Shown here piece by piece: positions 12,102 to 51,895 of a stretch of 64,000 nt of DNA (position 1 is the stretch's first letter; the number at the start of each line of letters is the position of its first letter). Both the position numbers and the translations under genes were made by a program. The notes under the pieces were generated by a model. It saw nothing but the letters and a program-made list of their open reading frames with translations. It was not told where the DNA came from and made no database searches. This stretch comes from Bugula neritina (lineage: Eukaryota > Animalia > Bryozoa): NCBI GenBank assembly GCA_964035545.1, contig OZ037772.1:10104818-10168817 (forward strand). The letters are read 5' to 3'.

Positions 12102-15100
12102 ATGGCATCTAAGCCGCAACAAATGGTGAGATGTACTATTTGTTTATTTGAAATCACATTAGAGGAATGTAAGGCATTGCCTTGTACTCACCCCAACTGT
12201 GCCAAGTGTTTGAATGAACTTTACGAAAAGCGGAACTTCCTTAAGTGCACAACATGCCGGTAGGTTTCTAATGTCATATTATTTATAATAATATTCTTGC
12301 GCTGTCACATGATTTATTAATTTGTTCAAGTTCTGCTATGTAGTACATAATGTTTATAATTTGGTAAGTATTATTATAATTGTAACGCCATATGACTTAT
12401 TACATGGTTTCTGCTATGTAGCGTATTTCTTATAATCAGGTTAAATAAATGAATGAAATGTCAAAAAAATTCTTTTACTCGTGACAACGAAAATGGTTGG
12501 AAGTCATTAAAGCAGCTTTCAGAAGAATTAATACAGACAGCAGCCTATAGCTCAATTCAATGTAATGACGAAAATTTCTAATACTTGATCTCTAAGATGT
12601 GAAAGGTTGAACTTTTCCTTGAAAATATTTTGCCTAAATTTGAATATTTGTTTTTTAAACTTTTTAACTAGCCAAGATGTGTCTGAGTTGCCAATTGCTA
12701 GACTAAGGTTAAAAGTTAAACTCATTATTAGAAATATATGAAAGCAGCTAGCTAGAGTTAGTTTTTGAACATTTGGTTTTAACTAGATATTTAGGTGGTT
12801 GATGAAGTTTACTGGCTCGATAGATGTTGAGCATGTTTTATTATTAAATGCCTTCAGCAACTAGACTATAGAGTTTTAGAAAGTTGGAAGTGTACACAAC
12901 AGAGCTATTGTTACTTACAATAGAGCTCGTTTATTTTTTACTCTATTCTTCGTGTGAATAAGTTAAGTATAACCAAGCCCTGCAGCCATAGTAACTGTGT
13001 ATATAGAGTCAAATATCTTTTATCCAAATGTTTTTGGAATAATGGAAAGCGTGACAAGCCTAGACTGTACTGAATGCAGGTGTTATTTAATACTCTGTAT
13101 TGAATTTAGTAGATCAATGCTATTATTAATTAATGGATTATAAGGACTATGCTGATGCTGACACTGTGTAGTTCAAATCCTCATATAGAGTCTAGCCTAT
13201 ATTTTTGTTATTCAATTAAGTATAAATAAAAGTTTTCATTTACTTTATTATGTTAAAATATGTGAAGTAATGAGTGGTGATTATTTATATTTAAATTTTG
13301 AAAGAGTTGGGTTTGATCTTCAGTTAATCATCGCATCTGACTGAGTTGCTTGTAGGTTAAGTATTGTCTGCCCACACATAGTTAACAATGGTGATATAAA
13401 TGTATGTATGATGGAAGATGTACCTAAATCTCATTCACATTTCTCAGTTCTCATGATTCGAATGGATCCGCGAGATGGCGGATTCATTAGATTGACATTG
13501 CCACCCATGCATAAATGAAAAAGTTATTTGCATAATGCAAAGCATGGGGATGTTGTAATTGCATCATTGCCAGTTTACAGATAGCGTTATACTACGGCCC
13601 TGTGTTATATATAAAAATTACAGATAATGCATTCAACAATAAACTATTTATGTTATATAGCCAGGTGTTCAATACAACACCTGATAAATTACCAACAGCA
13701 GACCAGATGAAACAGATAGACAAGTCTATACTCTGTGAAGTCTGTACAAAGTCAGAAGTGAATGATACACCTGCTCTGGTGTATTGTTTGGAGTGTCCCA
13801 AACTGTTTTGTGCTAAACATGTTATTGTAAGTTAAAACTTTTTAATTTCTTTTCTGTGTATATATATATATATATATATATATATATATAAAGTGGTAGC
13901 GGGGGGGGGGGGGGGGGCACAACGGTCATAGGGGTACAAAAAGCTGGCTGAATTATGAGAGAACTTATTGACTTAGAGTTGTGACTTTTATTTTAATAAA
14001 ATGGTATTGACATAATTATACAGTCATTGTAGTTTCAACACTCGCGAAACATATGTGTTGAAGAGGCGAGTAAAAAACTGTTTTTATCTATTTTTTGTAA
14101 ATTTTTAAGATGTCGTTAAAGCTTTATAACTGTTTACACTCTAAGGTAACAACCCTAGATTTTACTGATATTGTTGCCATCGCTTGCCTCTACATTGCTT
14201 AACTATTATAACAGCAAACTCTAAAATAAATTTTCCTTGAGCCACATTTATTTTCAATTTGGCCACACGGGGCACAATTGGCCACACTGACCGGGCACAA
14301 TGGGCCACCTGATTATTGCACCCTGATATCACTGTTATTAATTTGTTTGCCCAAAAGAGTTGGTTGAAATGTTATTAAAATCTATATAGATATAGCCATT
14401 TCTAACCTTTTTGTAAAATATCAAAGACATCATGGTAAGACTACCAAACTACAAGAGGAAGCTCCACTAATATATACATCTGGTGAGGTTAAAGCTTTGC
14501 CATTTTATATATAATACAAAACACTCTGCTGTTGCTACTGGTGGATAGGCATGATATTCATTATACATAATATCATTGAAGGAATATACATGTATTTGAC
14601 TAAACAAATTGCGATTTGCTTATTTTCTCGCCCTCCCCCTTCCTTACTCTAGTCACAAACCTCAGCCATGCACCTTAGCTAAAGTTCATAAAAGAAGTCC
14701 ACTCGGAATTTTGTATAACATGCTACTAAAAATCTTTGCTGATAAAAGTTCCTGTGAAGTGTAAATAGAAATTTTTTTTTCAGTTCTAAACAGTAATAAT
14801 AATGGCTCTGTAGAAAAGAGTGATGTGCGTTTAATTTTGCCTTTCCCTGCTATCCCTGGTGGCACAAACTGTACAGCTAAAACATGAATTTTGCTGTAGA
14901 TCTGAAAGAATACTTTTATTTATTTGTGATATTCAATAAATAAAGATCAGATGCAAAAAAACAGCAAAGTTTGAATATATTTGTTGTGTCCCACCCAGTG
15001 GCCCATTGTACCCTGGTGCAGGGGCACAATGGGCTGATTTTTTCATCATGAAAATTTCATCATTCTGAAAGTTGTAAGGGAGATAGAAACAACAAACTGA

Positions 15101-50300: not shown

Positions 50301-51895
50301 TCTTACATTTCCCAAAAAAGTAACTTATCTCAGATGGCTATACAGAGAACTATAAACAAACTCTCACAGCTTCTATAATATGATCTTTATAATTATATCA
50401 AACTTAAAAACCATGTAATAATCACCTGATCATCACGCTGTGTCCTTATCAAAACCAATAAATTTTTGGTTTCAGTTCTGAACTCATCAATGCTTGCAGC
50501 TATCTGTTTGTAATAACCAGACAAGTTGTCTTCTCTTGTCTTTAACTTTGTGATTTCCACCAGTTGCATTGTTAAATCTTTCAATGTCAAGAGTGTATGC
50601 TGTGATGTACCTGAAGTAATATATACAAAGTAATGTATAAGCTGTTGTGTACCTGAATCATGTAATATATATAGCAAGTAAACAGAAGAATAGACACTTA
50701 CCATCATAACATACACCAGCTGTAGATACACATTGAGTACAGAGTAGTTTGAGACAGACTTTACAACCCAAAGAATACTCTACGTCTGCATGTGTCTCAC
50801 ACATTCTCTTCTCTAATTTAGCAGCGCGAGCTATATACTCTGTCATATTAATTCTAGAATGTTCCTCGGCCAGATTGTCATGGTCCTAAGACAAATATAT
50901 ACAAAAGAGTTTGTGGCTTACTAACGATATTACATCTAAGATTGCATATATACATTATAATGGTTTTAATGTCATGATCATATAATGCCTAAAGTATATA
51001 TGCAATAGTATACAATTTAAAAATATTTAAAGATATATTGTACAATCTATTACAATAAAAGCATGGATGTAAGAAATCAATCTTGAGAGTTATGTCTCCT
51101 TGATCATAACTTTTATCTTATGTATAATAAACTACAGCATGCTGATCGATAAATTTTAGGAGGTAAAGACACAAAACCAATTCATGTAAGCAAATGAGTG
51201 AAAACAAGTGAAACCAAATGAATGTTTTCGATTGATGAATCAAATCAAATATTGTAAATAATTTGTTGCAAAGCTGATTAAATTATTTCTCTGCAAAGTA
51301 TCACCAAAATCTCAAGCTTTTAGTTTCAGAATATCACATATAAGGATATATACACAGAAAACACGAAAAATAGTGTTAACTTACAATGACATGTTTAGCA
51401 CAGTACAGTTTGGAACAAACTAAACAATACACCAGAGCAGGTTTATCATTCACTCCTGACTTTGTACAGACTTCACAGAGTATAGACTTGTCTATCTGTT
51501 TCATCTGGTCTGCTGTTGGTAACTTATCAGGTGTTGTATTGAACACTTGTCTGTAACATGAATGATAAATTTATTGTTGATAGATCATCAATTAGTTTTA
51601 TCTTAGAGAACATTTATCAATCAACGCTCATAGTATAATTCGCTCTGTTCCACCTTGTGATATTATATTAACTGTGATGTATACTAGACAGCAGACGTAG
51701 CGAAAACCACATAGCAAATACTTTGACATAAACTTACCGACATATTCCACATTTAAGAGCATTTAGCCTTCCATAGAATTCATTCAAACACTTGTCACAG
51801 TGTGGGTGAGTACAAGGCAGTGCCTTAATTTCCTCTAACTTGAGTTTAGATAAACAAATAGTACATCTCACCATCTGTTGTGGTTTGGATGCCAT
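47396..51895 (-). CDS. TRIM-like protein copy D, ~605 aa
   Basis: Exons 51895-51738, 51550-51385, 50885-50702, 50610-50426, 50233-50063, 49384-49273, 48397-47681 and 47520-47396; open frame. Confidence 0.9.
49667..49900. repeat. 20-bp minisatellite (CAGTGTCCTATAGTATTATA)n
   Basis: About 10 near-perfect units in copy D; degenerate versions at the same intron position in B (~25020-25300) and C (~36175-36460). Confidence 0.9.

Follow-up and report, generated by a model that had tools for sequence, protein, structure and literature searches.

A 64,000-nucleotide stretch of the Bugula neritina genome (assembly GCA_964035545.1, contig OZ037772.1, positions 10,104,818 to 10,168,817 of the forward strand; hereafter the window) carries a tandem array of TRIM genes. 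The original prediction had proposed that their C-terminal propeller serves as the diversified recognition surface of intracellular immune receptors. What kind of propeller do these proteins possess, does positive selection act on its variable patches, and what could such a gene family be for? Our sequence analysis indicates that the strands and bottom loops of the propeller are under purifying selection and that its top face is diversifying.

Four TRIM genes and the fold of their propeller

Six-frame translation and self-comparison of the window revealed four related loci in AT-rich animal sequence, for which gene models (A to D) were assembled exon by exon. Each gene has eight coding exons, GT-AG introns, matching intron phases and zero internal stops. 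Gene A (12102..19635, plus strand, 605 amino acids) consists of exons 12102-12259 (RING), 13661-13826 (B-box 1), 15479-15662 (B-box 2), 15748-15932, 17632-17802 and 18110-18221 (coiled coil), and 18665-19378 and 19508-19635 (propeller). The other three genes lie on the minus strand: gene B (22634..27696, 605 amino acids; exons 27696-27539, 27263-27098, 26593-26410, 26318-26134, 25947-25777, 24715-24604, 23637-22921 and 22758-22634), gene C (33599..44561, 606 amino acids; exons 44561-44404, 38381-38216, 37752-37569, 37477-37293, 37106-36936, 35872-35761, 34603-33890 and 33729-33599) and gene D (47396..51895, 605 amino acids; exons 51895-51738, 51550-51385, 50885-50702, 50610-50426, 50233-50063, 49384-49273, 48397-47681 and 47520-47396).

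Exon 1 encodes a C3HC4 RING, exons 2 and 3 two B-boxes, exons 4 to 6 a likely coiled coil, and exons 7 and 8 the propeller. In A to D the RING has the complete set of eight zinc ligands (C11, C14, C28, H30, C33, C36, C49 and C52), with Arg following the last Cys; Pfam matched it to zf-RING_2 (E 5e-4) and zf-C3HC4 (E 5e-3), both under the curated cut-offs. B-box 1 was recognized as a sequence pattern in exons 2 and 3. B-box 2 was weakly matched by Pfam (E 2e-4) and carries a Cys where the seventh His is usual; the B-box ligands are retained in relatives from a second bryozoan genus, Watersipora. The coiled-coil position holds about 150 residues that are helix-like and charged, as judged from the sequence without a coiled-coil predictor or model. 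A filamin domain precedes NHL in TRIM2, TRIM3 and TRIM71 and is missing in TRIM32 and Brat; the TRIM-NHL class does not require it. There is no room for one in A to D, where just about 30 residues separate the coiled coil from the propeller, and neither a signal peptide nor a membrane segment was evident in the four proteins. These exon-level models bear out the original prediction of four intact RING-B-box 1-B-box 2-coiled-coil-propeller paralogues. The conserved N-terminal half and the divergent propeller of B, C and D were likewise recovered, with 90-95% identity from RING to coiled coil, 76-80% in the propeller and 55-59% in the top-face loops. Introns described as nearly identical were overstated, since intron identity among these three genes is 69-98% and intron 1 measures 275, about 6020 and 187 bp, the longest being that of C.

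The propeller is encoded at 18665..19635 (plus strand) in A, where a linker and a closing strand accompany six NHL-like blades, and on the minus strand at 22634..23637 in B, 33599..34603 in C and 47396..48397 in D. C serves as the numbering reference (1 is the first full codon of exon 7), and B and D also possess the selected top-face sites described below. When the propeller exons of the four window genes and ten relatives were searched as single sequences, Pfam NHL (PF01436) gave zero matches, and single-sequence searches of Pfam and the PDB gave just weak generic propeller matches. With a profile of 100 family sequences, the first matches were Brat, TRIM3, TRIM2 and Thin (E 7e-12 to 1e-10). 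The homology is visible only with the family profile. A structure model of exon 7 compared with 48,161 chains placed Brat, Mei-P26 and TRIM2 on top and Lin41 fifth (Z 19-21). As this model lacks exon 8 and has merged strands, a complete Watersipora member was used to check the topology; its model (mean predicted local distance difference test score 92.7) has 24 strands in six blades, with the closing strand coming from the N-terminal side. Its top 15 structural matches were all TRIM-NHL domains (Z 25.5-27.8, root-mean-square deviation 2.2-2.8 Å, structural identity 10-18%), with Brat and TRIM2/3 ranking best (Z 27-28). The nearest clusters in the ESM Atlas were mostly molluscan NHL proteins (cosine 0.92-0.93). 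Assignments to WD40, PQQ or Kelch were rejected, since NHL ranked first by both profile and structure. We conclude that the propeller is, as modelled, a divergent six-bladed NHL domain, in agreement with the NHL type proposed earlier.

Location of positive selection in the propeller

The top, ligand-binding surface of an NHL propeller is built from its B-C and D-A loops, and its A-B and C-D loops make up the bottom (PMC4015489). The translations contain, as written, every one of the ten patch series given in the original prediction, including a one-residue indel in blade 3, and the variable patches are indeed D-A and B-C loops, which by this definition belong to the top face. The loop limits were drawn after the variation had been seen; a second model yields similar limits, and the Watersipora test described below is independent of them.

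Purpose-written codon models were applied to an alignment of 16 propeller coding sequences, four from the window and 12 from JGI. Model M2a was favoured over M1a (twice the log-likelihood difference, 2dL, of 223), with a ratio of nonsynonymous to synonymous substitution rates (dN/dS, omega) of 5.4 for 10% of sites; the comparisons of M8 with M7 and with M8a gave 268 and 214, respectively. Omega was 0.76 for the whole propeller and 0.33 for the N-terminal half. The sites with a posterior above 0.95 were 44, 46, 60, 83, 85, 121-125, 167, 183, 184, 207, 209, 247, 250, 252, 256 and 264-266. These 22 sites fall into 19 top-loop sites and three at the start of strand A, with none in the bottom loops. 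For scoring, site 85 was counted as loop and sites 209 and 256 as strand, plus one site at a strand end; 19 of 71 top sites and none of 37 bottom-loop sites were selected (Fisher p=0.0003). The class omegas were 1.77 for the top (p=1e-11 against 1), 0.39 for the bottom, 0.49 for the strands and 0.55 for the linker. In a strict set, limited to exon 7 of the 12 outside sequences and stripped of columns next to gaps, the test statistic was 62 and the top omega 1.47 (p=0.002); across sets, the bottom-loop omega ranged from 0.39 to 0.46. The patches thus have dN/dS well above 1, in the codon models as well as in the tree-free counts given below. For the blade-3 B-C patch (PDRL type), the proposed variation is present and significant selection is not. 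The blade-6 B-C loop in exon 8, absent from the patches listed earlier, is among the strongest.

Because B, C and D are mosaic (see below), 30 null data sets were simulated without positive selection and with the tree shuffled every 3, 10 or 40 codons; the statistic reached a maximum of 18.1, against 216 for the real data; recombination did inflate the test, and many of the 30 nulls passed the nominal threshold. Tree-free comparisons among B, C and D gave proportions of nonsynonymous differences (pN) of 0.25-0.29 and of synonymous differences (pS) of 0.11-0.12 in the top loops, a pN/pS of about 2.1-2.6, with pN of 0.05-0.06 over the remainder of exons 7 and 8 and of 0.02-0.05 across the N-terminal half. 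The pS values were 0.07-0.17 everywhere. Because pS is flat across regions, the mutation rate is not locally raised in the top loops, and local hypermutation was rejected.

The same pattern was obtained outside the window. Among 35 independent JGI proteins, entropy was 1.27 bits in top loops versus 0.45 in bottom loops. At the 13 most variable sites, all 35 of 35 close relatives had distinct combinations, with Met, Tyr, Arg and Trp enriched. In 25 Watersipora paralogues, which are 32% identical to C, the homologous sites were again the variable ones (1.78 versus 0.68 bits, p=8e-8).

We do not claim selection in the N-terminal half, where the signal (2dL 8.9) lies inside the range of the recombination nulls. 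In eight sequences, a few variable positions were seen midway along the coiled coil and ahead of the linker (residues 222-225 and 314-318, posterior 0.82-0.95). Such positions could influence which paralogues pair; their test signal falls inside the recombination null.

Relatives, copy turnover, expression and upstream sequences

The closest relatives of the window genes are 52 propeller-exon clusters from JGI with 52-82% identity, and the same exon series is present on several JGI contigs. At 50% clustering, 421 representatives matched the propeller. The full-length relatives are Watersipora subatra proteins annotated as uncharacterized or TRIM2-like, and every named sequence relative that we looked up was from Watersipora. 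Related-locus scans of metagenome contigs gave no matches, and the outside DNA comes from 12 exact look-ups. Judged by these sequences, the family comprises dozens of paralogues plus a separate Watersipora expansion, far more than the four genes of the window. One relative (L005, 7145-7308 and 2117-2274) carries 12 inserted residues in the loop preceding blade 6; with exon 1 read as in the remaining copies, stop codons follow the RING core, and this relative is perhaps a pseudogene or has a shifted exon boundary. On another contig (L001, 7304-9074), a retroelement integrase fragment (rve, H2C2) lies between two TRIM copies, with an extra exon 6 at 11345-11442.

Diversification was not uniform across copies. 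A JGI gene, L012, is an orthologue or allele of A, itself a divergent member of the family, with 93% protein identity, 88% DNA identity including the flanks, and nearly the same patches; in the top loops, pN (0.044) is below pS (0.059), on few changes. The proposed diversification therefore holds for B, C and D and not for A, and the conservation of the A patches suggests that some specificities persist during the radiation of the B/C/D clade. Mosaicism was seen among B, C and D (runs test p=1e-4), and C combines a B-like coding sequence with an A-type upstream region. A distance-based incompatibility test gave p=0.70 with just 13 synonymous sites, so that the mosaicism rests on the runs test.

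The window also contains the remains of further copies. At 31019..31461 (minus strand), an A/C-type upstream region is followed directly by a degenerate exon 8 (31149-31019), the gene body being missing. A direct duplication of about 91% identity relates 4943-9623 to 56903-61600 and 19609-21609 to 61742-64000. It includes a PTGES2-like gene on the minus strand, whose exon with the CPFC motif lies near 7013 and 58932, and its right-hand copy lacks gene A between a microsatellite and the last 27 nt of A-type coding sequence (61742..61768, plus strand).

Other features of the window are a C2-domain exon (54005-54379, minus strand; Pfam C2 E 0.016, synaptotagmin-like) adjoining the right-hand duplication boundary, and short open reading frames at about 1-3000 (plus strand) that by eye look like the C-terminal portion of a xanthine dehydrogenase or an aldehyde oxidase. 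Repeats comprise a 28-bp minisatellite of about 1.25 kb (55715-56963), 5-bp microsatellites (9491-10789), a 25-bp array (62591-62898) and, within intron 1 of C, a repeat of about 350 bp that is present twice (39343-40064). A high-copy repeat with a tRNA-like box, probably a short interspersed element, lies at 24230-24330 in intron 6 of B, is also found in C and had very high depth in every run.

Transcription and splicing agree with the gene models at the level of the family, though not for gene B individually. In three presumed RNA runs, compared with gene B at 88% likeness, contig joints or split alignments fell at predicted introns 1-4 and 6. In two of the three, the contigs were almost confined to exons and one intronic repeat. 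A run behaving as DNA had none of the listed exon joints. An AG acceptor 6-7 nt 5' of the ATG in A to D implies a non-coding first exon, and two RNA contigs reach 95 and 134 nt past exon 1. The original prediction had named dN/dS of 1 or less, scatter of the variable residues over both faces and unexpressed copies as observations that would speak against it; none of the three was found.

A motif resembling an interferon-stimulated response element (ISRE) or an initiator, CAGTTTCATTT, lies 810 bp 5' of the A ATG (11292..11302, plus strand), preceded by CCAAT- and GC-box-like sites and followed by a likely non-coding exon donor. It recurs on the minus strand with one change about 720 bp 5' of B in unrelated upstream sequence (28412..28422), about 500 bp 5' of C near kappaB-like and AP-1-like sites (45062..45072), and about 700 bp 5' of D in a third upstream type, 30 bp after a kappaB-like site (52591..52601). 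In its general form, CAGTTYCAYTT, it is thus found in sense direction 500-810 bp 5' of all four genes, in three upstream types without detectable mutual similarity; kappaB-like sites precede it by 30-60 bp in several copies. The window has seven matches against 0.31 expected, four of them upstream, two at homologous stop regions and one intronic. As a sign of inducible defence, the ISRE-like and kappaB-like motifs are suggestive only.

Possible function and relation to known TRIM systems

Starting from the demonstrated architecture, fold, selection and turnover, and taking ligand, E3 activity and pathogen link by analogy from work on finTRIM/TRIM5, TRIM56 and oysters, we consider it probable that the genes encode diversified cytosolic TRIM sensors or restriction E3 ligases that use an NHL propeller as the variable recognition module, in the manner of TRIM5 and the finTRIMs. 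Birth-and-death expansion in cheilostome bryozoans would have combined a fixed RING-B-box 1-B-box 2-coiled-coil scaffold with a variable NHL top face. The coiled coil would dimerise, as known from TRIM biology, and each paralogue would use its top face to bind a foreign ligand of its own, most likely a viral protein or one from an intracellular parasite. Clustering on the target may then activate the RING, the target would be ubiquitinated for degradation or signalling, and pathogen escape could drive the turnover of top-face residues. With slightly less assurance, we lean towards a broader view, in which the TRIM-NHL propeller of bryozoans, and perhaps of other lophotrochozoans, has become a large germline set of variable receptors that act inside cells under interferon-like regulation and couple different top-face specificities for protein or RNA to ubiquitination.

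Several points weigh against diversified pathogen sensors. Positive selection leaves the selective agent unnamed. The faces were assigned from strand order, not from measured exposure, and the codon models leave out multi-nucleotide mutation, which would, however, not favour one face in two genera. Expression evidence is at the family level (88% likeness) from runs whose RNA nature was guessed. The promoter motif was picked after a lead, and it also fits an initiator (consensus TCAKTY) near the likely transcription start and non-coding first exon. Finally, Brat, TRIM71 and TRIM56 use this same face to bind RNA. The main rival, which we consider unlikely, is accordingly a repertoire of sequence- or shape-specific RNA readers, whose paralogues, starting from an ancestral TRIM-NHL top face that binds RNA, would each be retuned to different viral or transposon RNA motifs and would repress the RNA or mark it for decay, somewhat like KRAB zinc fingers on DNA. 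The nearest relatives with a solved structure are TRIM-NHL domains, of which several bind RNA (Brat, Mei-P26, Lin41), and TRIM56's NHL-like domain binds viral RNA (PMC6623546). Brat R875, needed for RNA binding (PMC4015489), aligns with hypervariable site 85 in one repeat-level alignment, its numbering being inferred from the 756-1037 construct. Tyr, Trp and Arg are abundant among the variable residues, and the net charge of the top face averages +2.9; however, that charge spans -4 to +10, several paralogues are neutral or acidic, and the top face has zero invariant basic residues. Loop indels and exchanges to Cys, Met or Pro likewise seem more like a protein-binding surface.

Genetic conflict within the animal would also produce site-specific positive selection and copy turnover. 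The targets could then be proteins from endogenous elements, a vertically transmitted symbiont, a fused non-self colony or a selfish cell lineage. Bryozoans are colonial, Bugula harbours a symbiont, and the locus is present in runs labelled 'symbiont metagenome'. We regard this as quite doubtful: cytosolic-looking proteins are ill-suited as a surface allodeterminant, variation at these sites in Watersipora as well means that the cause is not tied to a single host-symbiont pair, and the upstream ISRE- and kappaB-like motifs favour inducible defence. A role in surface allorecognition ranks low, as no signal peptide or membrane segment is evident. The remaining explanation, that drift of redundant copies, recombination, hypermutation, misalignment or uncollapsed haplotypes created the pattern, could draw on the mosaic copies, the dead ones, the overall propeller omega of 0.76 and the inflation of the test by recombination. 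It is largely refuted and very improbable, since the top-loop omega exceeds 1 even in the strict set and the equally loop-like bottom stays at 0.39-0.46, pS is not raised in the patches, the null maximum of 18 is far from the 216 observed, and a second genus varies at the same sites. Moreover, the copies are unlike alleles in that they differ in upstream regions and intron lengths.

How do these genes relate to known systems? With TRIM-NHL class C-VII (TRIM2, TRIM3, TRIM32 and TRIM71/LIN-41; Brat, Mei-P26 and Thin) they share the RING, the B-boxes, a likely coiled coil and a six-bladed NHL propeller that is homologous to theirs. Known TRIM-NHL proteins are encoded by 3-5 conserved genes per animal and have a positively charged top face (PMC4015489), whereas the bryozoan family has dozens of tandem paralogues, no filamin, no Pfam NHL match and a top face that is under positive selection and varies in charge. 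The finTRIMs form teleost clusters with positive selection on ligand-binding loops and are virus-induced (PMC2657112). Like finTRIM and TRIM5alpha, the bryozoan genes form lineage-specific clusters with a near-identical RING/B-box half and positive selection on the ligand-binding loops of the C-terminal domain, but their recognition domain is an NHL propeller and not B30.2/PRYSPRY. The resemblance is thus convergent, and the genes are not finTRIM members. TRIM56 likewise carries a divergent NHL-like domain, and its antiviral activity requires the RING and the NHL-like part (PMC6623546); it is, however, a single human gene, and no diversified TRIM56 repertoire was found in the literature searched. 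Oyster TRIM2/3-like multigene families have been linked to disease resistance or tolerance in transcriptomes (PMC9892467, PMC6971885). They too are large lophotrochozoan TRIM families, for which the papers give expression only and no selection or structure mapping. If the bryozoan pattern extends to these oyster genes, the top faces of their propellers should bear the same selection signature.

Our literature search, which left most subscription journals outside, found neither a report on this bryozoan TRIM-propeller family nor one on an NHL face under positive selection. Diversified, positively selected TRIM repertoires have been described for vertebrate B30.2, and TRIM-NHL proteins are known as few conserved RNA regulators; in the present family, strong diversifying selection acts on the NHL face, and it does so at matching positions in two bryozoan genera. 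In a phylum whose immunity has been little described, the family is a concrete candidate for the specific recognition of pathogens inside cells, and the ligand question can be tested directly, as about 22 residues are named on a scaffold that is otherwise fixed. On their sequences, these TRIMs with an NHL-derived propeller are best described as divergent TRIM-NHL-like proteins evolving like finTRIMs. If the proposed role is correct, they would be an invertebrate counterpart of TRIM5 and the finTRIMs with a different recognition fold or, in the RNA form, a diversified set of RNA-sequence readers.

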